NCBI RefSeq assembly: GCF_052425735.1
Contig: NC_135764.1
Coordinates: 27,590,001 to 27,654,000, forward strand
Source: Oculina patagonica
Taxonomy: Eukaryota
Reading direction: 5' to 3'
Length of the DNA: 64,000 bases
Shown: positions 1-40,658 of the stretch, in pieces
Numbering within the stretch: the first letter of the stretch is position 1
Layout: the number at the start of each line of letters is the position of its first letter
Program-made: the position numbers and the translations under genes
The notes under the pieces: generated by a model
Told to the model about the DNA's origin: nothing
The model's database searches: none
What the model saw: the letters and a program-made list of their open reading frames with translations, nothing else

Positions 1-728
1 AGAGGTTGGTGATATAATGAAACACTACAATGGCCTATTAGCATCTCCTCTGCCATTCGTCCTAGCCGCAAGGATTGATCGGACGCCAGTTTATCGATGT
101 CAAAGATTTAAAAAAATTAAAAGCACCAGGTACAGGTAGTGGCTGGACCTACTCCATATCCGCAGAAGACAGCATTTGTTTCAGTGTCAACAAGCCTATC
201 AAGTTACATGGAGTCCAGCATTTTGGCTCTAAAAGTGGCGAGTACACGGTTTCAGCAGAAGTCGAAGATACCACAGCGGATGGCTCTTCTGGGATAAAAC
301 AGTCAGGAACATACACCTCTGTAAAACACGAAACTGAAACCTATTATTGCTTTGATGTATTGTTTGATCATCCAGTTTGTTTAGTGGAAGGAAGAAAGTA
401 TGAGATTAAGGTGCTTATCAAGGGTCCTGTATCATGGTGGGGAGCAGAAGGAAAAACATCTGTTGAGTGTGAAGGAGTACAATTCACCTTTACTCGTTCG
501 AATAATAGCCCTAATGGAACCTTAGTTACAGGGGGTCAGTTTCCTGCGTTAGTTTTCAGCAAAGTTTTGTTTAGTTTAGTCTTAATTCAGATTCCGTTTG
601 TAAAAGTTTCATTGACTATTACAAAACTAGTAAGGCACTCCTTTATTGAGAACAATTTGAAAAATTACAGTAGTAAAAGACGTTTAATGGATGTCATGTT
701 AACCGGTAGTGTATGTAAATTTAGTTAG
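1..728 (+). pseudogene. BTB-BACK-PHR gene copy A, 3' part (gene starts before window); two frameshifts
   Basis: Frame from nt 2 reads EVGDIMKHYNGLLASPLPFVLAARIDRTPVYRCQRF, matching the paralogs. An extra A in the A-run at ~110-116 shifts the PHR domain (GWTYS...HGVQHFG...NGT..GGQFP) into ORF 75..728. A 1-nt deletion at ~570 (GTTTTGTTTAG vs paralog GTTTTGGTTTAG/TGA) removes the normal stop. Either could be a homopolymer assembly error. Confidence 0.8.
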
Positions 729-2570
729 CAGTTATTTCCTGCAGCCCGTTGAGCAGTACAGTTATCAAGCTTCGTTTCAACTAGTCCGGAATCGATGCCT
801 TGTTATTGATGGCATAGAATTGTACTTAAGGTACTGGTATATAAAAAGCTTGCAATAATTATACTGAATATTAAAAGCAATGCATCTTGAATGACAATTA
901 TATTATTACTTTCATACAGTAGAAAATCAATTAGCTTCAATTACATGATATGTATGTCTTTTTAACTGCTTAAACAAGAAGTTCCGGTATAAAAGGGGCC
1001 TGGCCTGGCACGCCCAGTTGTCAGTCAATCATCAAAGCGTAAACAACTGGCAAACAAGCTGTGTATTTTCCACAACTGTTACTGATAAAATGTGTTTCAT
1101 TTTCGCTAGGAATATTCTGTTAAACGTTAGGAAGTTATTTTTCATATTTTTGTCAATAATATATCTTGGTTTCATGAGATTTCAAAGCATGTTCAGCTTG
1201 AAGGATGCTCGGCACCACAACGTGCCATGAATGCAAAAGTACAAATTTGCATTTCGCGCCGGAGAAGTGTGAAATGTGGTAGGTGCCATCCCTTTTATAG
1301 CGGAACTTCTTGTTTAAAATGACACCAGGTGTTGTATACAATACATTGCACTGATCAGATACATGATCACCCTCAATGAAACAGTGGTAAGGCACGCATA
1401 TGTGATCATATGTTTGAGGCCTGTATATGAGTTTAAAACAGACGTTAGACACGCGCGTCTAAGACAGGGTAGCATTTACCACCCATTAATCCCATTTGGG
1501 GGATTTTGTGTTCGTTAGATAGCTGTGGCAATAAGCTTTCATAAACCAATAAACGAAAGCCATAGAGATTTGGATAGTCTGAGCACTAAGCTAAGACATA
1601 CAGCTATGGAGAACTGATTAAATGCAAATTAAACTTCACGGCAATTTCATTAGTCCTTTGGCAGGATTAGACAACACATGCATGACTATATCTAAATTAA
1701 CACAGGCGTTTTGCTCTGGGACCAATCGCTGCCTTGGAGGGAGGAGGGAGTCGGTCATTTTTGCTATACAAGAAGGGATCCCGTTCTGGCCTCGCACTTT
1801 TGCCTAATAAGTGGGAGTCCTTACCCCTGATCTACGCTTGGAGGTTTCCAAATATGAAGCTTATAAACCAACACGAGTAAGCCAAGGAAATTGCTCAAAA
1901 TGCAACAAGTTGCTAGAAAAAAAAGTTGCTTTAAAGGGGAAAAAATTGCTCGAAATGTGAAAATGGGCCAAAAAGTTGCCGAGAAACTTAAGGAAAGCTC
2001 TATTGGTAATAAGAGAAGTCAAGCATTTAGCCCAACTGGCTCATAGCTCGTTTCTGTACATGTAGCATAAAAGGGCTAAGAGTATTGCTCCTACCCCTGG
2101 ATGGGATGCCTGTCCATAACAGGTTATTCTCCGGCATTCTGTCCGGAGAGGTTACCGGCGTAAGAATTCGTCAGTACCCATTTATACTGCTGGGTTAAGA
2201 GAGGCACTAGTTCTGCGAGAGCATTTTGTACTTGTGCACATTTATACTCCTGAGTGGAGAGAGGCAAATGCAGCGAGATTGATTATTTTATGCCAAATTA
2301 AAGAACACAACACAGTGTCACAAGTGTCTAAACGTTATTCAAGAGTCCATTAGAGAGGGTAACAAAATGAAAGGCAAGCTCGCGTTTGCCGTTTGTCGTA
2401 TAACGTCATGCTTAGTCTCTCTAGCTATTACTAAACCGAAATAAAATCGTTACATCTTTACAGATGGATCGTGAATAGGAAAAAATACAAAATGAATAAG
2501 TATTTTAAAAAAATTCCGACTAGTTCTATAGGCTCATCGACGTTGTAATTTATTTATTATACAATTTAGT

Positions 2571-2758
2571 GAGGCCTTCCAAGGGGGTTTCTGATGTCGC
2601 GTTTCTGATGTTTGGTGAGGGAAACATTGTCGCCGTTGCAAATATACGTTTCAGTGCTAGTTTCTGTCGGCTGTCAGTGCTCTGGAACAAGATTGTCGCT
2701 ACAGTTTGAGCTATTTTGGAGCAATGTTGCCTGTCGCCAAAACCCCTTGGAAGGCCTC
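2571..2758. mobile_element. MITE with GAGG termini and 6-bp TSD
   Basis: TIR GAGGCCTTCCAAGGGG / CCCCTTGGAAGGCCTC; TSD TTTAGT; paralogous empty site at ~20000-20015. Confidence 0.85.
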
Positions 2759-3757
2759 TTTAGTATCGGCTTGGTAACGATATAAGTAACTCTTCTAAAT
2801 TCTTCTAATTTAATGGAGTAACTGTTCTAAACGATTAAAATATCAACACTATATAATGTCCTCTACGATGGCCACGTTTTGCACAAAATTATTCTAGGAC
2901 AAAAAAAATGTTTCTGTTGTTTTAAATTAAAGGTAAATACCAAAGGAAACATTCTTCGAAGTGTTCAAAAATGAATTGAAACAGCGGCTAAAATATATAA
3001 ACACGTTAGTTCACATGCAAATAAAGAAAGTTCTCTGGAAAACTGTAAAATGTAAAGCACATGCATGACTATATCTAAATTAACAGAGACGTTTTGCTCT
3101 GGGACCAATCGCTGACCCAAAAAATAAAGCGGGCGGGGACGAGAAACATTTGCATGTATTTTTTGTGTATTTTTTAATAGGCCTTACCGTGACTTATAAC
3201 GAAACTTCGTTATCACATACATCATATGAACTTCTGTTAATAATTTATTTCTCTTGGTTACCAACGTGTTTCTTGATACCAGGGTTTCTGTGTGACTAGC
3301 CTGGAAAGGTATAATGGGTTATAGTTGTTCGCAGCTGACAAAAGTTCTCGTGCATTCGCGGTTACTCTTTTGTTGGCTATAAAAATAGTAAATGAACTGG
3401 CGCCCCGTAAGAAAACGTTTTGAAGGACAACCTTCAGTCAGTCCCTAACCATAACTGTGGTGCCTAAGTCGCCGCCGTTTTTACTGAAATGATTTCAAAG
3501 AATCATTCTTTTCTCTCGCTACTTTGACCGAATCAGTGAGCAATGTTATTCTTTGTTGCTCAATATGAAGACACATCGTACGAAGTCAATCAGGGTTCAT
3601 GTGTCTGTACACAAAAACAGTTATGACGTTTGCCTTTTTGGTAAATGTTTTTCTCAGCCGGAATTCGGGCCACGATATAGTATCAAGTGTCAAAAGTGCT
3701 ACGAACATTGTAAGCCTTCAGCTCGAAAAAAGTGAGCAAACTTTTTTTTGCGCAATC

Positions 3758-4555
3758 ATGGCTTCCTTACTCGTGCGTACCGGACGATTTATGTTTTTCG
3801 CTCTGATCATCGTTCAGGGCATATCGCTTGCTTCCTATCCAGCGAGGTACGAACACAATGCCAACGCTGGTTTCTATGGGCTAACTGCCCTGTACCTTCC
3901 TGCCCTCTTGTTATGGCTGCGTATAATATGGGATGAAGAAAGCCTTCCATGGCTCTTTGTCGTGTGGGTCTTGTATGTCTGGGTTGCGTTAGTGCCCCTC
4001 ATTGGAGCCATCTTTGGTCGAATCGAGGACGACATTGACAAAGAAACATTCTTTGGTCCAAACGTCTTGAAAATGACCTTGTGTATTTCACCGCTTCTGC
4101 TGTTGTTGCTGCTAAACACCGCAGTGGACTCTGTCGATTACCGAGAACTGGTTTTGAAGTTGTCTCTCCAAATCGCACTAGATCTCTTCGACGGAGTTGA
4201 AATGTTGGAAGTCATTCTCGAGGAGAACGAATTCAGCCATGGCATTCCAAAGAGTTTCGAGAAAGCCATGATTGCCTTCGTCTGCATCAGTTTCTTGGTG
4301 TCACCCTTGCAGTTGGCGGAAAACAAGCTGAGGCGTCACAGCGGGATGGGCGACTGGGATGTTTTCACGTGCACGGCTGTTTTCCGTATCATCGTTCAGA
4401 TACTTTGTGTCAATGGTGTGTTTTTGGTTCTCCGCTTGGTGCTCGTTTTCGACTACGGAAAAGATGCATCAATTTTCATCGCTAAAAATGGTATCATGCT
4501 TATTTTTAGTTCTTTAGAGTTGTGCTCGATCTTCGGTTGCTGTGGTTATGAATGA
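3758..4555 (+). CDS. CECR6/TMEM121-family multi-pass membrane protein, intronless, 265 aa (copy 1)
   Basis: ATG at 3758 aligns with the paralog start. Several hydrophobic segments; motifs ALDLFDGVEMLE, SPLQLAE and VN.VFL.LR...SIFIAKN resemble TMEM121/TMEM121B (LDLLD, IFxxKN) as recalled from memory. Confidence 0.8.
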   Translation: MASLLVRTGRFMFFALIIVQGISLASYPARYEHNANAGFYGLTALYLPALLLWLRIIWDEESLPWLFVVWVLYVWVALVPLIGAIFGRIEDDIDKETFFGPNVLKMTLCISPLLLLLLLNTAVDSVDYRELVLKLSLQIALDLFDGVEMLEVILEENEFSHGIPKSFEKAMIAFVCISFLVSPLQLAENKLRRHSGMGDWDVFTCTAVFRIIVQILCVNGVFLVLRLVLVFDYGKDASIFIAKNGIMLIFSSLELCSIFGCCGYE

Positions 4556-4574
4556 TCGGTAAATGACCATTTTA

Positions 4575-8246: not shown

Positions 8247-9584
8247 CTAAACCAAAACTTTACGGAAAATAAAAGCAGGAAACTGGCCGTTCCATACAGT
8301 GGTTGGTTTAGGGTTATTTATGGAAGAAGTGAAGGTGAATTGTACTCCTTCACACTCAACAGATGTTTTTCCGTTTGATCCCCACCATGATACAGGACCC
8401 TTGATAAGTACCTCAACCTCGTACTTCCTGCCTTCCACTAAACAAACTGGATGATCAAACAAGACATCAAAGCTATAGTAGGTGTCAGTCTCGTGTTTTA
8501 CAGAAGTGTATGATCCTGATTGTTTTATCACAGAAGAGCCATCTGTGGTGTCTTTGACTTCTACTGAAACCGCGTACGTGCCACCTTCAGAACCAAAATG
8601 CTGGACTCCATGTAATTTGATGGGCTTGTTGGCACTGAAACAAATACCGTTTATTGGGCAGAAGTCGTAGCACCATATACCAAATTCACCTGCTGAATTA
8701 AATTGCCTAAACCTTTGACATCGATGATAAATGCAGTCTAACCTTGATGCTTGGATAAATGGCAAAGGAGATGTCAGTACACCACTAAAGTGTTTCATCA
8801 TGTTACCAACCTCCTGAATGGTGAGAATGTGAGTATCAAATACAACAGAAACGAACTCCGCCTGTGACATCAGTGGAAACCTTATCGCTTTCACGATCTC
8901 CTCTCCCAGAATTCGTCTCTTTACATTGCCTTCAGGAGTCATGCCTTGCCTTTCAATTTCTTTTGTGGCCCAGCGATCAACAGCTTTGAAACGTTCCACT
9001 TCCTTTACGAACAACGCTTCTCTTTTCACAACAGCCTCCACAAGGGATCGCTCAAGTGTAACAAATTCATCTGACGTCACAGCTTCTTCAGTCTGCTCAT
9101 CAATCACTTCCCAGCATCGATCTTTCAGGTCTTTATCTTCAAATTTTTGAGCGTGCAGCAAAATGCAAAACACGTTGGATGGCTGTAAGTTGTCTCGCAG
9201 ATATTCTGTGCATTTCGCAGCGAGCGAAGGTACCATGTATTTGTTCGCCAAGTACAACACTTGCATCACATTACTTCCGCTCAAATTCACTTTGTCGCTG
9301 TACATATAACGAAACAACTCCAACAGACTCTCGAAATCACAGTCAAGCAGTTCAATAGAGTCTGTAGTCTCCGCCATTTGACCATAGAACATGGCAAAGA
9401 ACACAGGACTGCTGATGGCAAGAACGAACTTGTGAGCTGGGATCACCTTCTTACTTTCACTTTCGCCAGTCGACACTGGAACAACAAATTTCACATCGCT
9501 CAATAACTCGTTGTCGAAAATAAACGTAGTTCTCTCTGCGATGGTTGGTCGTTTCGTCTGCCAGTTGTCTTGAGCAAAAGCCAT
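8247..9584 (-). CDS. BTB/POZ-BACK-PHR protein (BTBD6-like), copy B, 445 aa, intronless CDS
   Basis: NWQT..ER..F.NELLSDVKF, IPAHKFVLAISSPVF (BTB); IRFPLMS (BACK end); RC.RF...GQFP (PHR). The ATG at 9584 is conserved across paralogs. Confidence 0.93.
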   Translation of the reverse strand: MAFAQDNWQTKRPTIAERTTFIFDNELLSDVKFVVPVSTGESESKKVIPAHKFVLAISSPVFFAMFYGQMAETTDSIELLDCDFESLLELFRYMYSDKVNLSGSNVMQVLYLANKYMVPSLAAKCTEYLRDNLQPSNVFCILLHAQKFEDKDLKDRCWEVIDEQTEEAVTSDEFVTLERSLVEAVVKREALFVKEVERFKAVDRWATKEIERQGMTPEGNVKRRILGEEIVKAIRFPLMSQAEFVSVVFDTHILTIQEVGNMMKHFSGVLTSPLPFIQASRLDCIYHRCQRFRQFNSAGEFGIWCYDFCPINGICFSANKPIKLHGVQHFGSEGGTYAVSVEVKDTTDGSSVIKQSGSYTSVKHETDTYYSFDVLFDHPVCLVEGRKYEVEVLIKGPVSWWGSNGKTSVECEGVQFTFTSSINNPKPTTVWNGQFPAFIFRKVLV

Positions 9585-14370: not shown

Positions 14371-15716
14371 CTAAACAAAAAACTTACTGAAAATTAAAGC
14401 AGGAAACTGGCCTTTTGTTACAGAAGTACCATTGGGGCTATTTTTCGAAGAAATAAAAGTGAATTGTACTCCTTCACACTCAACAGAAGTTTTTCCTTCT
14501 GCTCCGTAGCATGACACAGGACCGTCAATAAGCGCCTCAAGCTCGTACTTCCTACCTTCAACTAAACAAACTGGGTGATCAAAAAATACATCAAAGCTAT
14601 AATAGGTTTCAGTCTCGTGTTTTGCAGAGGTGTAAGATCCTGATTGTTTTATCAAAGAAGAGCCGTCTGTGGTGTTTTTGACTTCTGCGTGAACTGTGTA
14701 TTCGCCACTTTGAGAACCAAAATGCTGGACTCCATGTAACTTGATAGGCTCGTTGACAGAGAAACAAACACCGTCTTCTGCAGATATAGAGTAACTCCAG
14801 CCACTACAATCTGGCAGATCCGGCGAATTAAATACCTCAAATCTGTGACATCGATGAGCTGAAGCCTGATCAATCCTTGCGCCTTGGATGAATGGAAGAG
14901 GAGATGTTAATATGCCATTGTAGTGTTTCATTATATCACCAACCTCTTGCATGGTGAGAATGTAAGAATCAAATACAACAGAAAGAAACTCCGTCTGTGA
15001 CATCAATGGAAACCTTATCGCTTTCACGATCTCTTCTCCCAGAATTCGCCTCTTCACATCGCCAGCAGCAGTCATCCCTTGTCTTTCACTTTCTCTTGTG
15101 GCCCAGCGATCAACAGCTTTGAACAGCTCCACTTCTTTTACGTTTAACGCTTCCCTCTTCACAACAGACTCCACAAGAGATCGCTCAAGTGTGACAAATT
15201 CATCTGACGTCACAGCTTCTTCCGTCTGCTTCTCAATCACTTCCCAGCATCGATCTTTCAAATCTTTATCTTCAAATTTTTGAGCGTGCGGCAGAATGCA
15301 AAACACGTTAGATGCGTCTAGGTTGTCTCGCAGATATTCTGTGCATTTTACAGCGAGTGAAGGTATCATGTATTTGTTCGCCAAGTACAGCACTTGCATC
15401 ACATTACTTCCGCTTAAATTCGCTTTGTCGCAGTACATATAACGGAACAATTCCAACAGACTCTCGTAATCACAGTCAGGCAGTTCAATAGAGTTTGTAG
15501 TCTCCGCCATTTGGCCATAGAGCATGGCAAAGAACACAGGACTGCTGATGGCAAGCACAAACTTGTGAGCTGGGATCACCTTCTTACTTCACTTTCGCCA
15601 GTCGACGCCGGAACAACAAATTTCACATCGCTCAGTAACTCGTTGTTGAAAATAAACGTGGTTCTCTCTGCGATGGTTGGTCGTTTGGTCTGCCAGTTGT
15701 CTTCAGCAAAAGCCAT
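14371..15716 (-). pseudogene. BTB-BACK-PHR copy C with a single -1 frameshift near codon 43 (pseudogene or homopolymer error)
   Basis: Conserved ATG at 15716. At ~15588 the plus strand reads TTACTTCACT where paralogs read TTACTTTCACT. The rest (14371..15579) is an open 402-codon frame. Confidence 0.82.
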
Positions 15717-20626: not shown

Positions 20627-21958
20627 CTAAACTTTACTGAAAACAAAAACAGGAAACTGGCCTTTTGTTACATCGTTTCTTATAGGGGTATTAGTCGAAG
20701 AAGTGAAGGTGAATTGTACTCCTTCACACTCAACAGATGTTTGTCCTTTTGCTCCCCACCATGATACAGGACCCCTGATAAGCGCCATTAACTCATACTT
20801 CCTATCTTCCACTAAACAAACTGGATGATCAAACAAGACATCAAAGCTATAGTAGGTGTCAGTCTCGTGTTTTACAGAGGTGTATGATCCTGATTGTTTT
20901 ATCACAGAAGAGCCATCTGTGGTGTCTTTGACTTCTACTGAAACCGTGTACGTGCCACCTTCAGAACCAAAATGCTGGACTCCATGTAACTTGATGGGCT
21001 TGTTGGCACTGAAACAAATACCGTTTACTGGGCAGAAGTCGTAGCACCATCTCAAATCTACACCTGCTGAATTAAATTTCCTAAATCTTTGACATCGATG
21101 AAAAATGCAGTCAAACCTTGATGCTTGGATGAATGGCAAAGGAGATGTCAGTACACCACTAAAGTGTTTCATCATGTCACCAACCTCTTGAATGGTGAGA
21201 ATGTGAGTATCAAAAACAACAGAAACAAACTCCGCCTGTGACATCAGTGGAAACCTTATCGCTTTCACGATCTCCTCTCCCAGAATTCGTCTCTTTACAT
21301 TGCCTTCAGGAGTCATGCCTTGTCTTTCAATTTCTTTTGTGGCCCAGCGATCAACAGCTTTGAAAAGTTCCACTTCCTTTACGAACAACGATTCTCTCTT
21401 CACAACAGCCTCCACAAGGGATCGCTCAAGTGTGACAAATTCATCTGACGTCACAGCTTCTTCCGTCTGCTTCTCAATCACTTTCCAGCATCGATCTTCT
21501 AAATCTTTATCTTCAAATTTCTGAGCGTGTAGCAGAATGCAAAACACGTTGGATGGCTGTAAGTTGTCTCGCAGATATTCGGTGCATTTCGCAGCGAGCG
21601 AAGGTACCATGTATTTGTTTGCCAAGTACAGCACTTGCATCACATTACTTCCGCTTAAATTCGCTTTGTCGCTGTACATAAAACGAAACAATTCCAACAG
21701 ACTCTCGTAATCACAGTCAGGCAGTTCAATAGAGTCTGTAGTCTCCGCCATTTGACCATAGAACATGGCAAAGAACACAGGACTGCTGATGGCAAGCACA
21801 AACTTGTGAGCTGGGATCACCTTCTTACTTTCACTTTCGCCAGTCGACGCCGGAACAACAAATTTCACATCGCTCAGTAACTCGTTGTTGAAAATAAACG
21901 TGGTTCTCTCTGCGATGGTTGGTCGTTTCGTCTGCCAGTTGTCTTCAGCAAAAGCCAT
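20627..21958 (-). CDS. BTB-BACK-PHR protein copy D, 443 aa, intronless CDS
   Basis: Full ORF with the same motifs; closest to copy B. Confidence 0.94.
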   Translation of the reverse strand: MAFAEDNWQTKRPTIAERTTFIFNNELLSDVKFVVPASTGESESKKVIPAHKFVLAISSPVFFAMFYGQMAETTDSIELPDCDYESLLELFRFMYSDKANLSGSNVMQVLYLANKYMVPSLAAKCTEYLRDNLQPSNVFCILLHAQKFEDKDLEDRCWKVIEKQTEEAVTSDEFVTLERSLVEAVVKRESLFVKEVELFKAVDRWATKEIERQGMTPEGNVKRRILGEEIVKAIRFPLMSQAEFVSVVFDTHILTIQEVGDMMKHFSGVLTSPLPFIQASRFDCIFHRCQRFRKFNSAGVDLRWCYDFCPVNGICFSANKPIKLHGVQHFGSEGGTYTVSVEVKDTTDGSSVIKQSGSYTSVKHETDTYYSFDVLFDHPVCLVEDRKYELMALIRGPVSWWGAKGQTSVECEGVQFTFTSSTNTPIRNDVTKGQFPVFVFSKV

Positions 21959-22331
21959 CGCTACTCTTCAATCTCTTTGCCGGCTTTCTCCACAAGATTT
22001 ATTCGATACAGCAACGTAAAGCAATGTTTCAATCTGCGAAGCAGTCGAAAACGAAAGAGGAAACGGCTACCGCTGACTTGATCGACCGCAGGTAGCTAAA
22101 GTGTCACACAACAGCGTGACCTGTTTTTCTTTCCCACTAAATGCGAAAGAGAAAATCTATGTTTATAACTCATCACGAAGGGGAAAAAGTGCTCTATACC
22201 AACATACCATTTTACGAGTTGTTGTTTCGCTTAGTGTCAAAACGAGCCTATGTAAAAAAAAATTGATGATCTCGCGGGAACAGTCATTAAGGGCAGTCAT
22301 TTTCATCCTACTTTTAAAGTATACACCGTGA

Positions 22332-24612: not shown

Positions 24613-26628
24613 AGATAAACAGCTTTACGTTTGAGTACATTTTTCTAGTTTCCATTGTACAATTAGTTTATTGGCAAGTTCATCTAGAGACATTTCTTTC
24701 TGAAGAATAGATATAGTGTTTGACCAAGATGATGAGCAAATCTAGCTTGCGTTTTATGTGTTCCGAGAGCACATTAGTCGCGTGACATGTGTCGTGAAAA
24801 GCAATTTGTTCTTTTGAGAGTGTTACCTCAGTACCTTGACGATGATTGAACCATGATATAATTTGTGAATAAAGTTTTACAGACTTTACAGACTACTTGC
24901 AGTCAATAAACGTATGTTCTATTGAATCTGCATTAAAACAATATATACATTTATCGTCTTCGGCTAGGTGATATAGTTTGAGTTCTTTCTTCGTTACAAT
25001 TGTTCTATGCAAAAAACGAAAACAAAATTGACGAAGTTTATTGTCCTTAGTGAAGCGAGATATATCTTGAAAACTTCTAGTCCATTCACCAAGTTTTTCA
25101 GGGAATTTACTCTGCCACTTTTTTACACCACTCGGGACAATAGGATCATGGTTGTCGAACAATTGGTAATAGTTTTTGCAACGTGCTTCAGCCAGATTAA
25201 TTAAAGTTTTGTTTGAAAGAATGGATGTGGAGGTCGAGGAAAGATCACCTGCAGGAATAGAAGTTTGAGCTGCTCTTCTTTTCAACTCCGATGGAATGGC
25301 TGAAATTAGCTGAAAGTAGTGCATATAATTTGTGGTGATATTAAATTTGTCGCTAAACTCTTCGTACGATAAAAATTTGCCCTCAGAGTTTAACACATTC
25401 TTTACTGACACGATTCCGCGTTTAAACCATGATTTCCAAAACAGAGTTGCGTTGTCTATAGTTATCAAATTGTTATTCCAAAGAAAGAGTTCGCCATTTG
25501 GAAAGATGTTGGTTGTATTTTTGAGATCCTGAAAATACTGGAGAAGTTCTCGATAAAAGAGGGGTAGACCTGTCTTCAAGGATTTTACAGCATAATTGCA
25601 TTTAAGGAGAAATAATAAACCACCATACTTTCGAAAGTAGTAATTGGGGATTACCTTCCATTTATCGTCAGACTCGCCAAGTAATCTACCAATCCAAGCC
25701 AAGCGTAAAGATTTAACGATCGTGCAAAAATTAACAAAATTGATTCCTCCTTTTGCTATTGGTTGACACATAACCAATCTTTTTATTTTGCATTCTTTCC
25801 TGTTTTCCATAGAAATGCGAACAGATTCTCTTGTACAGTCTTGATAACCGATTCTGGAACTGTCAGCATCGATGCTGCGTACACTAGCTGTGATATACCT
25901 AAAGCTTGCGCCAATAAAGACTTGCCATATATCGTGAGGTCTCTTGAAAGCCATAAATTTAATTTTGTTTTCATTTTGTTCATCTTGACATAAAAGTTTT
26001 CCTCAGTACATTTGTTTTTGTTGTAGGATAGATGGATTCCAAGAACTTTAATAGGTTCTTTAGTTGTTTTAAAGTCAAGTACTTTCAAATTGCTGTCTTT
26101 CATAGAACCGATCCACATAGCTTTAGTTTTCTTCTTATTTAATTTTAATCCAGAGATGATTCCAAAACAATCCAAGATCTGTAAATAGGGTTTGAGAGAT
26201 TCAACATTTTTTGTTATTATAGTAGTGTCGTCAGCAAACTGTGATATTTTGACCTCCTGGTTATCTGGGAGGGACACGCCTCTGCAGCTTGGTTCTTGGC
26301 GTATCTTTGCTGCTAGCAGTTCCGCAGCAAGGATGAATAAAAGAGGACTTAGCGGGAAACCTTGACGAACTCCTCTTGATATATTAAAATAATTGGTCAA
26401 AAATCCACCATTTATTACTGCGCTTTGCACACCGTTATAAAGAATTGAAATCCACCTTTTAACATTTGGGCCAAAATTGAAAACGTTCAGGGCTTTAACA
26501 ATAAAATCCCATTCCAGGCTATCAAAGGCCTTCTCAAAATCAATAAAGAGAAGGAGTCCCGAGGTCTTGTTAGCATTTAGATATTCCATTACATCACTTA
26601 AAAGTCTTATGTTCTGGCCTATGTACCT

Positions 26629-27234
26629 TAGGGCTTTCCACAAGTTGCTCGAGATTCCCTAGAAAGTTGCTCGTAATTTCTCAAAAAGTTGCTCAAAAGT
26701 TGCTCCAAAAATCCAAAAAAGTTGCTCCTGATAATAAAAGTTGCTCGAAAGTTGCTCCAAAAAATCCAAAACGTTGCTTCTAATCAAGAGAATTTCTCTA
26801 AATATATGCTAATTTCCCTTTGATAGTAAGATTTCTAAGCAGTTTTATGCAATTGTACAGCAAAAGAAGTATCTAAATAACATATTAAGGGGAAATTTGT
26901 TAAATAACAAGGATTTCTTTAACTGAGAAAAATCGTGAAGATATCAATGACGTCATGTTTGCTGACGAGTTTTGTAATGTTTCAATGCAAAATGAGCCGA
27001 AAGTTGAAATGTCTTCAGATGTTCCTCGAAAGTCTTCGGCAATCTTCGTAAATCTTCGGAAACGTTCGTATTGCGTTTGAACAACACTCGGATAATCTTC
27101 GGAGATCTTCGGTCTGGAAATTACTCAAAATGCAACAAGTTGCTCGAGAGCAAAAAAGTTGCTCGAAGGGGAAAAAGTTGCTCGAATCGTGAAAAGTTGC
27201 CAAAAAGTTGCCGAGCAACTTGTGGAAAGCCCTA
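26629..27234. mobile_element. hAT-type MITE inserted in the LINE RT domain
   Basis: 23-bp TIR TAGGGCTTTCCACAAGTTGCTCG / CGAGCAACTTGTGGAAAGCCCTA; 8-bp TSD ATGTACCT (26621-28, 27235-42). Removal restores GFVKGRYIGQNIRLL. Related fragments at ~1890-2002 and ~6720-6910. Confidence 0.92.
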
Positions 27235-28505
27235 ATGTACCTTCCCTTAACGAATCCGGTTTGATCTGAATTAATTAATTTTGGTAGGTATTGTTCTATT
27301 CTTTTTGCCAAAAATTTAGTCAGAATTTTATAATCGATATTAAGTAAAGATATTGGACGCCAGTTGGAAAGTTCAGACAGATCCCCATCAGCTTTTGGTA
27401 TTAACGTTATTATTCCCCTCCTTTGAGAAATAGATAGGGACCCGCTTTGAAAAGCTGCATTATAAGAATTAAGCAGATCTCTCCAAATGAGATCATAGAA
27501 AGACTCGTAGAATTCCTTAGTGAATCCATCCTCAACAGGGGTTTTATTGTCCGAGAAAGAGCCCAGCGCCTCTTTTAATTCCTCAAATGTAAAATCATAT
27601 TCCAGTGAATCTCGTTCCTCGGCATTCAGTTGAGGGATTTCAATACCTTCAACAAAAGACTCAAAACTCTTATTTTCACCCAGAGGTTCACTATTAAGAT
27701 TGTTTTTGGATGTGAACATATTACTATAAAATTTTTCCAGTTCTTTCTCAATCTGTTTTGGTTGTGTTGTTTTATACCCATTCTCTAATTTCACTTCGCG
27801 TATAAGCTTTTTTTCATAATTCGTCTTTTCCAAATTAAAAAAGTATTTTGTGGGTTTTTCTCCCTGTTCCAACCATTTCACTTTAGATCTAAAGATTGCC
27901 TCTTTCCCTTTGTGTTCATATATCTTTTTCAATTCTTCTTTGGCGGCCTCATACTCCACAAAAATGTTTCGATCTAAAGTTTCAAAATCCGTATTACAAA
28001 TTTTATAGTCAAGGTCTTGTATTTGTTTTTGAAGTGTTGATTCCCTTTTTCTAAGTTCCAATCTTTTTTCTTTAGAATATTTAATTGTTTTCATTCGTAA
28101 TTCCATTTTGATTAATTCCCACAATAGTTGTTTATCTTTAACATCGGTGTATTTCTCGTGTATTCGGGGATAAGAAATGCAATACGTTCTTTAAAATCGT
28201 CATCTTCTAGCAGAGAATTGTTGAATTTCCATGTACCCGGACCTCTGTTGAGCTCGTTTCTAATGTTAATCTTTAAAAAGGTAGCTTTGTGATCTGGTGC
28301 AACTGACATTCGAATCTCAGCTGTTTGGACTTCAATAGAGATCGGGCGGGAGACAAGGATGAAATCTATTCTCGATTTCAATTTATTAGTTTTGGATTCG
28401 TAGGTAAACTGATGGCTACATCCAATAAATTAACAGATACGTTTTTCTCTGGGACCAATCCCTGCCAGGGAGGGGAAAGGGAGTCGGTCAGTTTTGCTAT
28501 ATAAG

Positions 28506-31008: not shown

Positions 31009-31066
31009 ATTGTCTCGATTGATCATGATCAGGGTCAGTATTTAATATAAAATGGTCATTTACCGA

Positions 31067-31861
31067 TCAGTCATAACCACACCAACCGAAGATCGAGCAC
31101 AACTCTAAAGAACTAAGAATAAGAATGATACCATTTTTGGCGATGAAAATTGATGCATCTTTACCGTAGTCGAAAAAGAGCACCAAACGGAGAACCAGAA
31201 ACACACCATTGACACAAAATATCTGAATGGTAATGCGCAAAATGGCCTTCCACGTGAAAACATCCCAGTCGCCCGTCCCGCTGTTACGTCTCAGCTTGTT
31301 TTCCGCCAACTGCAAGGGTGACACCAAGAAACTGATGCAGACGAAGGCAATGATGGCTTTCTCGAAACTCTTTGGAATGCCATGGCTGAATTCGTTCTCC
31401 TCGAGAATGACTTCCAACATTTCAACTCCATCGAAGAGATCTAGTGCGATTTGGAGAGACAACTTCAAAACCAGTTCTCGGTAATCGACAGAGTCCACTG
31501 CGGTGTTTAGTAGCAACAACAGAAGCGGTGAAATACACAAGGTCAATTTCAAGACGTTTGGACCAAAGAATGTTTCTTTGTCAATGTCGTCCTCGATTCG
31601 ACCAAAGATGGCTCCAATGAGAGGCACTAATGCTACCCAGACATACAAGACCCACACGACAAAGAGCCACGGAAGGCTTTCTTCATCCCATATTATACGC
31701 AGCCATAACAAGAGGGCAGGAAGGTACAGGGCAGTTAGCCCATAGAAACCAGCGTTGGCATTGTGTTCGTACCTCGCTGGATAGGAAGCAAGCGATATGC
31801 CCTGAACGATTATCAGAGCGAAAAATACAAATCGCCCAGTACACACGAGAAAAGTAGTCAT
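31067..31861 (-). CDS. CECR6/TMEM121-family membrane protein copy 2, 264 aa, intronless
   Basis: Near-identical paralog of 3758..4555 in inverted orientation. Confidence 0.8.
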   Translation of the reverse strand: MTTFLVCTGRFVFFALIIVQGISLASYPARYEHNANAGFYGLTALYLPALLLWLRIIWDEESLPWLFVVWVLYVWVALVPLIGAIFGRIEDDIDKETFFGPNVLKLTLCISPLLLLLLNTAVDSVDYRELVLKLSLQIALDLFDGVEMLEVILEENEFSHGIPKSFEKAIIAFVCISFLVSPLQLAENKLRRNSGTGDWDVFTWKAILRITIQIFCVNGVFLVLRLVLFFDYGKDASIFIAKNGIILILSSLELCSIFGWCGYD

Positions 31862-31865
31862 GGTA

Positions 31866-32460
31866 GAGCCAAATTGAACTGTTGCTTAGTTTTTACCGGC
31901 TGAAACTAAGCTTACACTGTTCGTAACAATTCAGAAACTTCGTACTAAGGTGACTTGAATTCCGAGAAAAACATTTCTCTCGACAAAAGGCAAACACAAA
32001 TTCTCGGAAATTACGTCATAACTGTTTTTATTCCGTGTACAGACATGGACCCTGACTGACCTCGTACGTTGCGCCTTCATATTGAGCAAAAAAGAGTAAC
32101 ATTGCCCATTTATTCGGTCAAAGCAGCAAGAAAAAAAATTAATGATTCTTTGAAATCATAGAGCAGAATTGAACTGTTGCTTAGTTTTTATCGGGCTGAA
32201 ACGAAGCTTACAGTGTTCGTAACGATTCAGAAAGTTCGCACTAAGGTAGCTTGAATTCCTAGAAAAACATTTTTCTCGATAAAAGGCACAAATTTCTCGG
32301 AAATTACGTCATAACTGTTTTTATTCCGTGTACATACATGAACCCTGACTGACCTCGTACGTTGCGCCTTCATATTGAGCAAAAAATAATAACATTGCCC
32401 ACTGATTCAGTCAAAGCAGCAAGAAAAACATGAGAAGCATTAAATGATTCTTCGAAATCG
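31866..32460. repeat. ~295-bp tandem duplication of the immediate upstream region of TMEM copy 2
   Basis: 31866-32160 and 32161-32460 align along their length; the segment is single upstream of copy 1 (~3490-3755). Confidence 0.85.
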
Positions 32461-35063: not shown

Positions 35064-36419
35064 TCAAAGTTGGCTGAAAATAATAGCAGGAAACTGGCCA
35101 CCTGTTACATAGGTCCCATTAGGGCTGGAATCCGAAGAAGTGAAGGTGAAATATACTCCTTTGCACTCAACCGCTTTTTTTACTTTTCTTCCAGCTCCAG
35201 AAATAATATAACCTCCATACCACGACCTAGGACCACTGATTAAGGCGTCAATGTTGTACTTCCTACCTTTCTCTAAACAAACTGGATGATCAAACAAGAC
35301 ATCAAAGCTGTAATAGGTGTCAGTCTCTTGTTTTACAGAGGAGAATACTCCAGAGTGTTTGATCATAGAAGAGCCATCTGTGGTGTCTTTTACTTCTGCT
35401 TGAACTGTGTATTCGCCACCTTCAGAACCAAAATGCTGAACTCCATGCAACTTGATAGGCGAGGTGACAGAAAAACAAATACTGTCATTTTTGTTGTCGG
35501 AATAATTCCAGTGAGCATCTGGTGGGTTAAATTTCTCAAATCTGTGACAACGATAAACTGAAGCAGCCGGGTTAATCCTTGCAGCTTGGGTGAATGGTAG
35601 AACAGATGCTAATATGCCACTGTAGTGTTTCATTATATCACCAACCTCTTGCATGGTGAGAATGTAAGAATCGAATACAACAGAAAGAAACTCTGCCTGT
35701 GACATCAGTGGAAACCTCATCGCTTTCACGATCTCCTCTCCTAAAATTTGTCTCTTTACCACGCCATCAGGAGTCATCCCTTGTCTTTCAATTTCTTTTG
35801 TGGCCCAGCGATCAACAGCTTTGAATAGCTCAACTTCCTTTACGTTCAACGCTTCTCTCTTCACAACAGCCTCCACAAGGGATCGTTCAAGCGTGACAAA
35901 TTCATCTGACGTCACAGCTTCTTCTGTCTCCAGCTCAATTACTTCCCAGCATCGATCTTCCAAATCTTTATCTTCCAATTTCTGAGCCTGCGGCAGAATG
36001 CAAAACACGTTAGATGCGTCTAAATTGTCTCGTAGATATTCTGTGCATTTCGCAGCGAGCGAAGGTACCATGTATTTGTTCGCCAAGTACAGCACTTGCA
36101 TCACATTACTTCCACTTAAATTCGCTTCGTCGCTGTACATATAACGAAACAATTCCAACAGACTCTCGTAATCACAGTCAGGCAGTTCAATAGAGTCTGT
36201 AGTCTCCGCCATTTGACCATAGAGCATGGCAAAAAACACAGGACTGCTGATGGCAAGCACAAACTTGTGAGCTGGGATCGCTTTCTTACTTTCACTTTCG
36301 CCAGTCGACACTGGAACAACAAATTTCACATCGCTCAGTAACTCGTTGTTGAAAATAAACGTGGTTCTCTCTGCGATGGTTGGTCGTTTGGTCTGCCAGT
36401 TCTCTTCAGCAACAGCCAT
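35064..36419 (-). CDS. BTB-BACK-PHR protein copy E, 451 aa, intronless CDS
   Basis: Conserved ATG (MAVAEENWQT) at 36419. The PHR domain has an ~8-aa insertion (GGYIISGAGRKVKK). Confidence 0.93.
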   Translation of the reverse strand: MAVAEENWQTKRPTIAERTTFIFNNELLSDVKFVVPVSTGESESKKAIPAHKFVLAISSPVFFAMLYGQMAETTDSIELPDCDYESLLELFRYMYSDEANLSGSNVMQVLYLANKYMVPSLAAKCTEYLRDNLDASNVFCILPQAQKLEDKDLEDRCWEVIELETEEAVTSDEFVTLERSLVEAVVKREALNVKEVELFKAVDRWATKEIERQGMTPDGVVKRQILGEEIVKAMRFPLMSQAEFLSVVFDSYILTMQEVGDIMKHYSGILASVLPFTQAARINPAASVYRCHRFEKFNPPDAHWNYSDNKNDSICFSVTSPIKLHGVQHFGSEGGEYTVQAEVKDTTDGSSMIKHSGVFSSVKQETDTYYSFDVLFDHPVCLEKGRKYNIDALISGPRSWYGGYIISGAGRKVKKAVECKGVYFTFTSSDSSPNGTYVTGGQFPAIIFSQL

Positions 36420-39314
36420 CGTTACTCTTTTCTTTCTTGACAAGTTTTATTCGACACAGCCGAATTTCAATCTTCGAAGCCGTCGATCGTCGAAAACGAA
36501 AGAGGAAACGGCTACCGCTGACTTGAAAGCAGGCTCCTAAAGTGTCACACAACAGCGTGACCAGCTTTCGTTTACCATTTGAAGCTTTGAACAAACAGAG
36601 TTTTTATAGGTAACTCACATGCGCTAGACAGAATAACTGTTAAAAATTATTGTAATTAGGGACTGGTCATTTTTAAGAGGGTGGAGAGGGCTAGGCTGGT
36701 TCAAATAGGCGGAGGGTCAATGATTTTATGCAGGGAAAATGGGGAGGTTTAAGGGGCCGGGTGAGTGGGTTAGACGGGAGAGGGTCACCAAAAATCTGCT
36801 TTATAAAAGGGGAGGTTCAGGAGAATTTCAACAAAGCCTGCCCTCCCCCTCTAAACAATGACCGGTTCCTAAGAAGACACTTTTCGCCAAGGTCGTTGCT
36901 TTTGACTGCGACGCCTGTACAGAGGTAACAAACAAATAAAACGTACGTACAGAATTGAATGCGTACATGATAGGAAAACCTTACTGAAGTGACCTGAACA
37001 CATGGGATACCTTTGTCTTAAAATTCCAGGAACCGAACAAATATGCGCTTTTGTATCAGAGAAAGCATTTTAGTTCTTAGCTCTTTTTCATTTTCAGTCC
37101 TCTATTCAATTTTGAACTTCTAGGGGTCTAACTCAATACAAAGTCGAAGACTTCAAAGTTTATCAGATTAGATTTAAACTTATCAAGTAGGACGGGAGCA
37201 AGATTTCAAACCATTTCCCTCCTATTCACCCACCCACGTTTAGGTGAGTAAATAAGCGCCAGTTAAAATTGTTTCGGCAACCTGGCAAGTATCCCACCCG
37301 GGGTTGTAGCAATCAACATACTCCCGGGAGCGGAGGGGGCACTCCTATATTAAAGGGGCAGTATGCTCGTCCTTTCACTTCGGGGTGTAAGTTACAGATT
37401 TTGATCTTGCTTAGGGTGTTAAGGACACAAAAACCGATATTTTTCCTAGCCTTCAAGGTCTTGTTTAGGGTTTCCCGTTAAAAAAAGAGAATAATAAAAA
37501 AACGCCGTGTTACTGCGTTATTGGTCTAGATAAATCAGATGGTATCTTTCAGGGGTCAAAAACGCTTGAACCACGCCCAGATCTGTCTCCTTTTCCAACG
37601 AGCTTTATTTTTTTCCTATATGGCAGTACCCTAAGGAAAAGTGCCTGCCTTATGTTGGCTGAGTTATATATGTACTCGTAGTCGCACATTTGGGACATGG
37701 TCTATTGGAAAAATGATCCAGTCCAAACTTTGTTGTAAAGAGTCTTTTGTTTCATTATTCCGTTGGCAGGATTAGATCGCATATGCGTGAATGTAACAGA
37801 AAGTTGTTGCTCTGGACCAATTGCCTCCAGGGAGGGAGGGAAGAAGGAGAAAGTCAGCCATTTTTTGTTGAAATCTAAATATCCTCTACTTCTGTCGTAA
37901 AGGCAAACGTCAGTTGCTATGCCAGGTAGGTCCCTTTTTGGCCATCACTAGGAAGTGGTCCCTTCCTTTTATCTGTATCACTAAACGTTTCCAAAAGTGA
38001 AGTATATAAACCAAAACTTACAGGTTAAAACGAGGTTAAGAATCAGGTCGACCTGGTTATTTCATTTAGGTGATGCTGTCACACTAGGTAACGCGATTGT
38101 TCAAAAACTAGCCGAGTTGTCGACAAATGTTGTTTTCCTTTTTTTGCAAAGGGAACCTGTTAAGTTGCCGGTAAGTACTTTTTTAAACAGGTTTTTGTTA
38201 ACTTGCTGCACGCCGTGCTGTCTTTTCATTTGTTTACAACTAAAGGCTGGTTTTCATTGAGCAAAAGCACAAGCATAAGCACACTGATTAGCATAAGCGC
38301 ATAAGAACAGGAGCACCCAATGAGGAAATTCAGTCAAAAGTCCTAGAATGTCGTTGTACTGTTTTCCCGTGTCGTTTCGGGTCTTTTTAAGAGATGTTTG
38401 TGTTAACTAACACAGTTAGGGAACAAAATCTCATTTCCCGTATTTGCAAGCTTTTACCTTTACAAAAATCTTAGCTGGCGTTTTCCCGCACCCAAACGAA
38501 CATTTTTACCTCTCCGAAAACAACAGGTGTTAGATATTTCCCATATTACGAAGGTTCGAGCTGAAATTTCACTAAAGAAAATTTCAGGGGATATCAGGCC
38601 TTCCGAGCAGATATTCACCGAAATGATCCGTTGGGCGCCCCTGTAAGACGAACGAACACGCTCATTCTTTTCAAGATGCTTTCCTCACGTGGCATAAGCA
38701 TAAAACTGTTTGTTCTTCTTTTACTTTCATTATGCTTATCAGTGCCACATGAAGACATCTTTACTGAAGAAGTTTAAATTATTATCATGAGAATGTGTTC
38801 TACCTATTGCTGGACATTTTATTCTTACATCCTCACAAAATTCTACTGATTCTATCAGAAGAGGCCAAGCAAATATCAGCAATCTTTTAATTCCTACCTA
38901 CTGTATCACCAGTGCCATGTATTGTACACAACGCCTGGTGTCGTTTTAAGCAGTTAAAAAGACATAAACATATCATGAAATTGAAGCTAATTGATTTTCT
39001 ACTGTATGAAAGTAATATAATAATTGTCATTCAAGATGCATTGCTTTTAATATTCAGTATAATTATTGCAAGATTTTTGTTTACCAAAGATTTTATTGCA
39101 AGATTTTTGTTCATTCAGTTGTGTATTATTACCCTGGGTACCATACGTTTTTTTACAGTGATATGTGTGTGGCGAAGACGCTAAAGCGCGATCTATGAAA
39201 GGCGAAGTCGCTATTGTGGTAAGCTTCTCCGTTTGTGTCATGCTTTAGTGGAATCGCCACTCCTCACAAACAATAGTCCAGGAAACTTCAGTGGAGACTG
39301 AAGTAAGGCTAAAC

Positions 39315-40658
39315 TCAAACCAAAACTTTACTGAAAACTAAAGCAGGAAACTGACCACCTGTTGCAGAAGTTCCATTACTAGGGGTAGTATACGAAGAAG
39401 TAAAGGTAAATTGTACTCCTTCACACTCAAGAGATGTTTGTCCTTCTTCTCCATACCATGACACAGGACCACTGATAAGCGCCACAAACTCATACTTCTT
39501 ACCTTCCACTAAACAAACTGGATGATCAAACGATACATCAAAGCTATAATAAGTGTCAGTCTTGTGTTTTACAGAAGTGTATGATCCTGATTGTTTTATT
39601 ACAGAAGAGCCATTTGTGGTATCTTTGACTTCTGCTGAAACCGTGTACTCGCCACCTTGAGAACCAAAATGCTGAATTGCGTAAAGCTTGATAGGCTTGT
39701 TGACAGAGAAACAAATACCGTCTTTTTTTGATTTGCAGTAGCTCCAGCAATTAACTGACGGAACGGGCGAATTAGATTTCTTAAATCTGTGACATCGAGG
39801 AACTGAAGCCCGATCAATCCTTGCGGCTTGGATGAATGGTAGAGGAGATGCTAATATGCCATTGTAATGCTTCATTATATCACCAACCTCTTGAACCGTA
39901 AGAACATAAGAATCGTATACAACAGAGAGAAACTCTTTCTCTGACATCAATGGAAACCTTATCGCTCTCACGATCTCTTCTCCCATAATTCGTCTCTTTA
40001 CATCACCACCAGTAGTCAACCCTTGCTTTTCACTTTCTTTTGTGGCCCAGCGATCAACAGCTTTGAACAGATCCACTTCCTTTACGCTCAACGCTTCTCT
40101 CTTCACAACAGCCTCAACAAGGGATCGCTCAAGGGTGACAAATTCATCGGACGTCACAGCTTCTTCTGTCTGCTTCTCAATCACTTCCCAGCATCGATCT
40201 TCTAAATCTTTATCTTCAAATTTCTGAGCGTGCGTCAGAATGCAAAACACGTTGGATGCGTCTAGGTTGTCTCGCAGATATTCTGTGCATTTCGCAGCGA
40301 GCGAAGGTACCATGTATTTGTTTGCCAAGTACAGCACTTGCATCACATTACTTTCGCTTAAATTCGCTTTGTCGCTGTACATATAACGAAACAATACCAA
40401 CACACTCTCGTAATCACAGTCAGGCAGTTCAATAGAGTCTGTAGTCTCCGCCATTTGACCATAAAGCATGGCAAAGAACACAGGACTGCTGATGGCAAGC
40501 ACAAACTTGTGAGCTGGGATCACCTTCTTACTTTCACTTTCGCCAGTCGATGAGACAACAAATTTCACATCGCTCAGTAACTCGTTGTTGAAAATAAACG
40601 TGGTTCTCTCTGCGATGGTTGGTCGTTTGGTCTGCCAGTTCTCTTCAACAACAGCCAT
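39315..40658 (-). CDS. BTB-BACK-PHR protein copy F, 447 aa, intronless CDS
   Basis: Full ORF with the same motifs. Its 3' flank (~38975-39070) is nearly identical to the 3' flank of copy A (~850-945, reverse complement). Confidence 0.94.
   Translation of the reverse strand: MAVVEENWQTKRPTIAERTTFIFNNELLSDVKFVVSSTGESESKKVIPAHKFVLAISSPVFFAMLYGQMAETTDSIELPDCDYESVLVLFRYMYSDKANLSESNVMQVLYLANKYMVPSLAAKCTEYLRDNLDASNVFCILTHAQKFEDKDLEDRCWEVIEKQTEEAVTSDEFVTLERSLVEAVVKREALSVKEVDLFKAVDRWATKESEKQGLTTGGDVKRRIMGEEIVRAIRFPLMSEKEFLSVVYDSYVLTVQEVGDIMKHYNGILASPLPFIQAARIDRASVPRCHRFKKSNSPVPSVNCWSYCKSKKDGICFSVNKPIKLYAIQHFGSQGGEYTVSAEVKDTTNGSSVIKQSGSYTSVKHKTDTYYSFDVSFDHPVCLVEGKKYEFVALISGPVSWYGEEGQTSLECEGVQFTFTSSYTTPSNGTSATGGQFPALVFSKVLV

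Follow-up and report, generated by a model that had tools for sequence, protein, structure and literature searches.

The window (64,000 nt of Oculina patagonica chromosome CM126641.1, approximately 27.59-27.65 Mb) carries six intronless BTB-BACK-PHR genes of the BTBD6-like type, arranged in tandem and designated A to F (Table 1). All six had been proposed in a sequence-only reading of this DNA, and ORF translations, Pfam and similarity searches found each of them in place. The array does not start at position 1, as that reading had it: copies continue upstream of the window, where a directly adjacent block, 99.8% identical, marks a local duplication, and where two more copies with identical proteins lie together with a third TMEM121 paralogue. 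Eight copies were sampled along the array. Within the window, the first TMEM121/CECR6 paralogue is co-duplicated with the BTB genes, and LINE-type ORFs are inserted between copy D and the second TMEM121 paralogue. The segment 18050-18400 was considered as the scar of a seventh BTB gene and rejected; tblastn detected no coding remnant in it, and positions 18242-18399 match intergenic DNA from the distal part of the region upstream of the D unit.

Table 1. Features of the window. Residue numbers follow copy D.
Feature	Position	Strand	Remarks
Copy A, 3' part of a 5'-truncated BTB-BACK-PHR copy	1..566	+	Probable pseudogene
TMEM121/CECR6-family paralogue 1	3599..4555	+	PF14997
Copy B, intact 445-aa BTB-BACK-PHR ORF	8247..9584	-	Sister of D; NGT of loop 3 lost
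Copy C, full-length with 1-nt deletion	14371..15716	-	Deletion at 15589/15590
Copy D, intact 443-aa ORF	20627..21958	-	Reference for residue numbering; ORF and Pfam
Loop 3 of D, residues 421-436	20651..20698	-	422-425 and 429-432 hypervariable around NGT, before fixed GQFP
Loop 2 of D, residues 396-404	20747..20773	-	G396, P397 and S399 fixed; 398, 403 and 404 vary
Loop 1 of D, residues 297-311	21026..21070	-	Hypervariable; flanks invariant W304 and Y306
21-nt conserved upstream element, inverted repeat GTCAC-N8-GTGAC	22101..22121	-	About 140-190 nt 5' of ATG
LINE-type retrotransposon ORFs, reverse-transcriptase-like	24893..28124	-	Read from translations only
TMEM121/CECR6-family paralogue 2	31067..31915	-	86% identical to paralogue 1
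Copy E, intact 451-aa ORF	35064..36419	-	8-residue insertion in loop 2
Copy F, intact 447-aa ORF	39315..40658	-	ORF and Pfam

Of the six window copies, A and C are broken, a point missed by the sequence-only reading. Copy A begins only at about D codon 65-75, suffers a frameshift from a 1-nt insertion within an A7 run (window positions 110-116) and lacks the family stop near 566-575, its ORF extending to position 728; the NCBI gene model joins it to the downstream TMEM121 gene. In copy C, the deletion falls in an A3 run and shifts the frame after codon 42. Since both indels lie in homopolymer runs, an assembly error is possible in either case; the truncation of copy A is not an error of this kind. 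Copy A is probably a pseudogene. For copy C, the choice is between recent loss of function and an assembly error at the homopolymer. Pseudogenes and gene fragments occur in and near the arrays of this family.

Copies B to F contain a BTB/POZ domain (PF00651, E 1e-22 to 1e-24) followed by BACK (PF07707, E 1e-8 to 1e-11), and PHR is recognized in all six copies (PF08005, E 1e-23 to 1e-30). The best solved match to the BTB portion is the BTB domain of human BTBD6 (2VKP; E 1e-26, 43-45% identity). The phi-x-E motif that contacts Cul3 is represented in D by M70-A71-E72, aligned with the M-S-E of KLHL3 (chain 4HXI_A), and shows a conservation of at least 90% across 98 coral homologues. As judged from these similarities, the BTB-BACK module appears to be of the Cullin-3-docking type. 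An AF2 model of the D PHR domain (pLDDT about 90) was matched by Foldseek to the PHR domains of BTBD2 (3NO8; target-normalised TM-score 0.83) and MYCBP2 (3GBW and 3HWJ; 0.82-0.89). An alignment showed that the coral family shares the signature residues W-x-Y, NGT and GQ[FI]P with the PHR domains of human BTBD2 and mouse MYCBP2.

A 21-nt element precedes the start codon of D and is repeated at 9727-9747, 15855-15875, 36542-36562 and 40782-40802; it is also found 5' of most family members at other loci, in Oculina, other coral assemblies and metagenome contigs. As for expression, 28-48% of the sampled 31-mers of D and only 5-7% of the words of the E-F stretch are present in RNA-labelled runs, these figures being k-mer shares only. 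A search for transcript contigs encoding the exact D and F proteins returned the genome assembly only.

The family extends well beyond this locus. A protein database search gave 3414 matches; the best 120 of these have 47-100% identity in the best local alignment, 117 of them at least 67%. Among Atlas clusters with at least 50 members, 25 belong to the family, mostly from Cnidaria. In Oculina, CM126646.1 and CM126642.1 carry arrays as well, placing the family on at least three chromosomes, and another coral assembly has a syntenic array with TMEM121. In both syntenic arrays the copies group by species. The arrays of Oculina and other corals document a tandem expansion specific to the lineage, with birth and death of copies, amounting to dozens or more genes per genome.

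The loop sequences on which the sequence-only reading was based agree with the translations in 18 of 18 cases, and its central observation, that the PHR loops are where differences and in-frame indels accumulate, was borne out. Compared pairwise, the window copies are 83-94% identical in amino acids over the N-terminal half (BTB-BACK; mean 87.5), 72-92% over the PHR scaffold (mean 78.5) and only 29-70% (mean 45) over the three loops as first delimited. To call the N-terminal half "nearly identical" was nonetheless an overstatement, given this mean and dN values of 0.02-0.09, and the strands between the loops, said to be fixed, each have one or two substitutions in some copies. Column entropy computed over the 98 coral homologues is highest at residues 281-311 and 421-432, with the peaks in loops 1 and 3. 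Hypervariability thus holds for these two loops but not for loop 2, where only residues 398 and 403-404 vary besides the insertion in E. Loop 1 also differs in length between copies. Identity, entropy and regional omega values all concentrate the variation in the putative substrate-binding domain. The variable residues occupy DSSP coil segments (297-311, 396-400 and 421-436) beside the conserved motifs; the PHR signature residues themselves mostly stay fixed while their neighbours vary, although NGT has given way to KPT in B and to IRN in D. The variable coil segments may lie at one end of the PHR sandwich.

Comparisons between individual copies are informative as well. B and D differ in loop 1 by a probable compensated frameshift and in loop 3 by replacement of 8 of 11 codons, with no synonymous change in the other three. 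A and C have similar loops despite a loop dS of 0.75 (omega 0.26). Except for this pair, every sampled member has loops of its own, for which no donor was found among 120 homologues. On these grounds, loop swapping by micro-conversion was rejected for the sampled set. The loop type kept by A and C, combined with unique loops elsewhere, can be read as a sign of retained specificity.

Selection was analysed in a codon data set of 23 intact genes plus copy C, taken from loci encoding homologues (a metagenome scan for the family gave only 4 loci). Site models M1a and M2a, more conservative than M7/M8, were complemented by our own controls for variation in the synonymous rate. The self-written code keeps relative branch lengths and kappa fixed; its M0 likelihood (-13959.998) agrees with that of IQ-TREE (-13959.997). 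Regional omega was 0.17-0.32 in the N-terminal half, rose to 0.3-0.6 for the PHR scaffold and spanned 0.26-2.7 among the loops. With constant dS, comparison of M2a to M1a gave 2dlnL values of 237, 129 and 104 in three data sets, with candidate sites almost all within loops 1-3. However, a three-class model with a neutral fast class (alpha = beta = 3.2), whose synonymous rate is raised threefold, outperforms M2a by 37 lnL units. When the synonymous rate of the fast class was freed, its omega was 1.06 (2dlnL 0.2, not significant), or 1.08 with a PHR-only tree. In the best-aligned material, a gap-free subset of 12 genes, omega of this class was about 1.8 (p = 0.02) with synonymous-rate variation allowed. 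The codon-model evidence anticipated for a diversifying substrate face was obtained under constant dS, but in the site models with a freed synonymous rate it reached significance only in that subset; since paralogues recombine, false positives are possible in the site models. Per-site FEL-like tests on 23 sequences were underpowered for loop 1, whose two rates are both high. Loop positions evolve at the neutral rate or faster; adaptive diversification of the PHR loops is only weakly shown, and diversifying selection on them is no more than plausible.

We considered the possibility that constraint is simply relaxed, the surface loops of redundant duplicates drifting neutrally and gaining indels without acquiring distinct specificities. 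The omega of 1.06-1.08 in the fast class and the pooled loop omega of 0.8-1.0 fit this view, as do the pseudogenes and gene fragments, the probable compensated frameshift between B and D and the weak representation of E and F in RNA runs. Several results fit it poorly. Besides the value of 1.8 in the best-aligned subset, a FUBAR-like scan, at a P(beta>alpha) cutoff of 0.9, identified 9 positive sites in PHR versus 2 in the N-terminal half (Fisher p = 0.002). In sister pairs, the dN of structure-defined loops exceeded gene-wide dS in 9 of 11 cases (p<0.05 in 4), by up to 3 times. Drift would also not be expected to preserve the A/C loop type at high dS, to replace most codons of loop 3 between B and D while leaving the others without synonymous change, or to spare the signature residues within the loops. 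Relaxation alone is a possible but somewhat doubtful account.

A second concern is that the contrast between loops and remainder is an artefact of concerted evolution: conversion would homogenise BTB and scaffold, diverged loops would stop the conversion tracts, and the loops would display the true, older divergence. Recombination is evident. A single tree is rejected by the AU test (p = 0.046 and 7e-5), and nearest neighbours shift along the gene, D resembling C most over codons 1-50 (a single difference in 150 nt) but being sister to B from codon 176 onward. Moreover, dS rises from 0.15 in BTB through 0.25-0.38 in BACK and PHR scaffold to 0.40-0.56 in the loops, and both the threefold raised synonymous rate of the fast class and the grouping of copies by species point the same way. 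The uniformity of the BTB domain is in part due to gene conversion among paralogues. Yet, purifying selection also acts on the N-terminal half, as seen in its low omega and in 116 of 282 codons under negative selection in the FUBAR-like scan. BTB dS is low between species too (0.23), indicating that homogenisation inside one genome accounts for only part of the pattern, and in several pairs loop dN exceeds the loops' own dS, which conversion leaves unexplained. We consider this explanation unlikely. Templated or somatic diversification, in which donor cassettes or targeted hypermutation would rewrite CDR-like loops, shares only an appearance with the array (localised hypervariability with raised synonymous change) and deserves hardly any credence: tblastn and blastn searches of the window turned up neither additional loop-like cassettes nor incomplete pieces of PHR, the 120 homologues include no loop donor, and the differences are germline, between distinct loci.

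The interpretation we favour, at a probability of roughly 0.6, is that the genes form a cnidarian-expanded family of Cul3 adaptors evolving by birth and death, in which the PHR loops provide a repertoire of specificities. The array is one of several of a large, intronless BTBD6-like family whose turnover proceeds via local duplication, truncation, frameshifts (as in A and C) and transposon insertion, with gene conversion probably keeping the BTB end especially uniform. Differences between paralogues are mainly interleaved with the PHR motifs, around W-x-Y in loop 1 and NGT/GQFP in loop 3 and at one to three positions by loop 2, and arise partly through in-frame indels and the probable compensated frameshift. 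Judging from sequence, the loop differences suggest a diversified binding repertoire: each copy might bring its own ligand to Cul3-RBX1 through its set of PHR loops, the family as a whole then constituting a repertoire of substrate specificities. Counted against this interpretation are the two broken copies out of six and the low share of E-F words in RNA.

Families such as MATH-BTB and F-box of nematodes and plants, or TRIM5/finTRIM with B30.2, combine a constant ligase-docking module with a rapidly diverging substrate-binding domain, and positive selection is clear in the MATH-BTB, F-box and TRIM B30.2 families. The coral array resembles them in being tandem, in its birth and death with pseudogenes and in varying in the loops of a beta-sandwich. 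It differs in using PHR as the putative recognition module and in its equivocal selection signal. To our knowledge, neither a hypervariable family nor a defined ligand has been described for the PHR domain, and our literature search found no ligand of any BTBD PHR domain. A flat, conserved and likely protein-binding surface was seen in the PHR1 crystal structure (reviewed in PMC4806438). In MYCBP2/Highwire/RPM-1, whose PHR has the same fold as the coral domain, the surface is conserved and serves neuronal localisation, whereas the coral residues beside the same motifs are the most variable of the protein.

Vertebrates have four BTB-BACK-PHR genes (bioRxiv 10.1101/575910). BTBD1, BTBD2, BTBD3 and BTBD6 show the same domain order as the coral copies, and the BTBD2 PHR has a similar fold (3NO8) with an identity of only about 24%. 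The coral genes, unlike these, are intronless and tandem with hypervariable loops of varying length, and B and D lack the NGT present in the vertebrate proteins. The BTB-BACK portion of Btbd6 binds the N-terminal domain of Cul3, and the one mapped Btbd6 substrate, Plzf, binds the BTB domain, not PHR (bioRxiv 10.1101/575910). This last point weighs against specificity residing in the PHR loops. Tandem expansion of BTBD6 is itself already known from deep-sea vent snails, with 56 copies in Chrysomallon and 35 in Gigantopelta, and one of the two papers places BTBD6 among immune-related expansions (PMC7736800, PMC7895826). As far as the consulted portions of these reports go, the parallel is a lineage-specific, BTBD6-like tandem expansion in a symbiont-hosting invertebrate, described by copy number and clustering only, without PHR-loop or selection analysis. 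The snails belong to a different phylum, and their expansion is independent.

A further step would be to suppose that corals, and perhaps Cnidaria at large, employ hundreds of intronless BTB-BACK-PHR genes as a germline-encoded repertoire for intracellular recognition, their loops binding viral proteins or those of intracellular bacteria or dinoflagellate symbionts for Cul3 ubiquitination. We hold this to be rather improbable; if true, the family would be the PHR counterpart of TRIM5/finTRIM and nematode MATH-BTB and would provide the first defined role of PHR as a variable binding module. If the loops do set specificity, corals own a large, fast-turnover family of Cul3 adaptors, possibly a new layer of intracellular surveillance or symbiont control in cnidarians, and a natural library of loop variants for finding PHR ligands, even those of human BTBD1/2/3/6. 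If the loops are merely unconstrained, the array reduces to ordinary tandem gene turnover with gene conversion. Oculina patagonica is facultatively symbiotic. It is also known for a Vibrio-induced bleaching disease (PMC10945359). These two properties make expression and binding tests practical in this species.

The six BTB-BACK-PHR copies (A to F) are pairwise 83-94% identical in amino-acid sequence over the BTB-BACK half and 72-92% identical over the PHR scaffold, with values of 29-70% for the loops quoted by the sequence-only reading, which had described a nearly identical N-terminal half and three hypervariable PHR loops (loops 1 to 3: residues 297-311, 396-404 and 421-436 of copy D, the reference for numbering). 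The quoted loop strings all match the translations of the copies, and the contrast between N-terminal half and loops is real and family-wide; its two terms, however, were overstated. The BTB-BACK half is the most uniform region, at the identities just mentioned, but not near-identical. When 98 coral homologues are aligned, column entropy is maximal at residues 281-311 (linker end and loop 1) and 421-432 (loop 3); of loop 2, only residues 398 and 403-404 add to the variability. Our best reading, to which we give a probability of about 0.6, is functional diversification of a PHR binding surface. A serious rival is that relaxed constraint and gene conversion together lie behind the loop divergence.

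The BTB domain finds its closest match in the BTB of human BTBD6 (2VKP). At the sequence level, the phi-x-E motif contacting Cul3 is at least 90% conserved, its M-A-E aligning with M-S-E of KLHL3. In an AlphaFold model of copy D, the PHR domain is confident (pLDDT ~90) and the BTB part poor; the modelled PHR matches, at target-normalised TM-scores of 0.82-0.89, those of BTBD2 (3NO8) and MYCBP2 (3GBW, 3HWJ). Within the loops, W304, Y306, G396-P397, NGT and GQFP are invariant and constitute a PHR signature, present too in BTBD2 and MYCBP2; the variable positions alternate with them within DSSP coil segments 297-311, 396-400 and 421-436. In vertebrates, which have four BTB-BACK-PHR genes, the BTB-BACK part of Btbd6 binds Cul3 while the PHR domain does not, and the substrate Plzf is recruited via the BTB domain (bioRxiv 10.1101/575910).

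The loops had a pairwise Nei-Gojobori omega of 0.26-2.7, compared with 0.3-0.6 for the PHR scaffold and 0.17-0.32 for the N-terminal half. Codon models were fitted with a purpose-written likelihood program, whose M0 lnL of -13959.998 compares with -13959.997 from IQ-TREE. For 23 full-length genes, M2a (-13289.52) was strongly preferred to M1a (-13407.93; 2dlnL 236.8), with an omega of 3.4 for 7% of sites; the candidates fall almost exclusively within 284-311 (linker or loop 1) and 422-432 (loop 3) and on residue 398. However, in a control for variation of the synonymous rate, a fast neutral third class (alpha = beta = 3.16) with as many parameters as M2a fitted these genes better (-13252.58), as expected if constraint were relaxed, and freeing alpha and beta gave 3.03 and 3.20, for an omega of 1.06 (2dlnL 0.2). 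The PHR-only tree had the same outcome (2dlnL 104, then omega 1.08). Other results weigh against this rival. With 12 genes of two syntenic arrays and gap-free columns (M2a versus M1a, 2dlnL 129), the freed model yielded alpha 3.06, beta 5.45 and omega 1.8 (2dlnL 5.3, p = 0.02); and a FUBAR-like grid assigned P(beta > alpha) >= 0.9 to 11 sites, of which nine lie in the PHR domain and two in the N-terminal half (Fisher p = 0.002). Altogether, these data suggest, rather than demonstrate, diversifying selection at the PHR loops.

Sister pairs were compared with loops delimited by the secondary structure of the model. The ratio of loop dN to gene-wide dS ranged between 0.93 and 3.03, exceeding 1 in 9 of 11 pairs and being individually significant in four. 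Sisters B and D differ by 2-3 nt per 150 nt in the scaffold and by 13-20 in the loop windows; in loop 3, 8 of 11 codons are replaced and the three unchanged ones carry no synonymous change, while part of loop 1 looks like a compensated 2-nt frameshift. The loops of A and C are of one type, kept at omega 0.26 despite a loop dS of 0.75, which fits specificity retained after divergence.

The nearest neighbour of a copy shifts along the gene: D is closest to C in codons 1-50 and sister to B from codon 176. In AU tests, the tree of codons 1-175 and that of the later codons are mutually rejected (p = 0.046 and 7e-5). Mean dS is lowest in the BTB (0.15), intermediate in BACK and PHR scaffold (0.25-0.38) and highest in the loops (0.40-0.56). 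Thus, gene conversion adds to the uniformity of the BTB, and probably also to the apparent synonymous excess in the loops; standard site tests are weakened accordingly.

The window corresponds to about 27,590,001-27,654,000 of Oculina patagonica CM126641.1 (GCA_052425735.1), as judged from homologue names, locus look-ups and coordinate arithmetic. The gene present in six copies is intronless and has Pfam BTB, BACK and PHR domains, and the duplicated unit extends from ~290 nt 5' of the ATG to ~50 nt beyond the stop. The array, of putative Cul3 adaptors, evolves by birth and death. Neither A nor C is intact: C lacks one nucleotide at 15589/15590, and A, whose start lies only at about family codon 65-75, carries one additional A in its A7 run at 110-116 and no longer has the family stop. 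Upstream of the window the array goes on: a third TMEM121 gene lies there, together with two more BTB-BACK-PHR copies that encode identical proteins (P0004). The P0004 gene lies in a ~6 kb tandem block (L002:1-6280 and L002:7991-13968 of the locus fetched on that side; 99.8-100% identity, period 7,990 nt), which stems either from a very recent event or from duplication of a haplotype or in the assembly.

Features of the array, with the residues of copy D singled out by the FUBAR-like grid
Feature	Location	Strand	Basis or scope
Copy A	2-566	+	Pfam domains, translation
Copy B	8247-9584	-	Pfam domains, translation
Copy C	14371-15716	-	Pfam domains, translation
Copy D	20627-21958	-	Pfam domains, translation
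Copy E	35064-36419	-	Pfam domains, translation
Copy F	39315-40658	-	Pfam domains, translation
TMEM121/CECR6 paralogue, among BTB copies	3599-4555	+	
TMEM121/CECR6 paralogue, among BTB copies	31067-31915	-	
LINE-type retrotransposon, between copy D and TMEM121 paralogue	24893-28124	-	three overlapping ORFs, reverse-transcriptase-like by translation
21-nt element	9727-9747, 15855-15875, 22101-22121, 36542-36562, 40782-40802	-	window
21-nt element, other loci	L001, L002, L004-L006, L008, L009, L011, L013		several coral assemblies
FUBAR-like PHR sites	301, 308, 390, 391, 398, 403, 419, 424, 430		

Further Oculina arrays occur on CM126646.1 and CM126642.1. Beside intact copies, the latter contains partial BTB-BACK-PHR fragments (L006:3878-4705, 6007-6627 and 17307-17991), among them an N-terminal half and a PHR half that has diverged to 51% identity, which again attests to gene death in the family. 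Another coral assembly has a syntenic array with TMEM121. TMEM121/CECR6 genes, also found at L003:3442-4239 and L004:6026-6823, are interleaved with BTB genes in both corals' arrays, so the two families duplicate together. The idea that segment 18242-18399 is what remains of a deleted seventh BTB gene was ruled out: the segment duplicates, at 88% identity, intergenic DNA from the distal upstream part of the D unit, and no coding remnant was found in it by tblastn.

A protein search gave 3414 hits; nearly all of the best 120 had at least 67% identity, the three exceptions being longer proteins with 47-55% matches. In the ESM Atlas, 25 clusters with 50 or more members, mostly cnidarian, have the BTB-BACK-PHR architecture. 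Gene trees group Oculina copies, and those of other species, by species, indicating rapid turnover, concerted evolution or both. Literature searches found no published account of coral BTB-BACK-PHR arrays or of hypervariable PHR loops. Tandem BTBD6 expansions of 56 and 35 copies are described in vent snails, the relevant portion of that report containing no loop analysis (PMC7736800), and another report lists the vent-snail family as immune-related (PMC7895826). An immune interpretation of the coral array is conjecture.

Between 28% and 48% of sampled 31-mers of copy D were present in 14 RNA-labelled runs from five studies; for the E-F stretch the figure was only 5-7%. Most family members in the fetched loci carry, 137-187 nt 5' of the ATG, a 21-nt element with the inverted repeat GTCAC-N8-GTGAC, a candidate common promoter or 5'UTR element that could imply co-regulation. 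Unrelated to the array are two long ORFs (51206-51814 and 54777-55949, minus strand) of coiled-coil-like sequence with many E, K, L and Q residues; separated by an assembly gap (N run 53357-53534), they resemble exons of a large structural gene.
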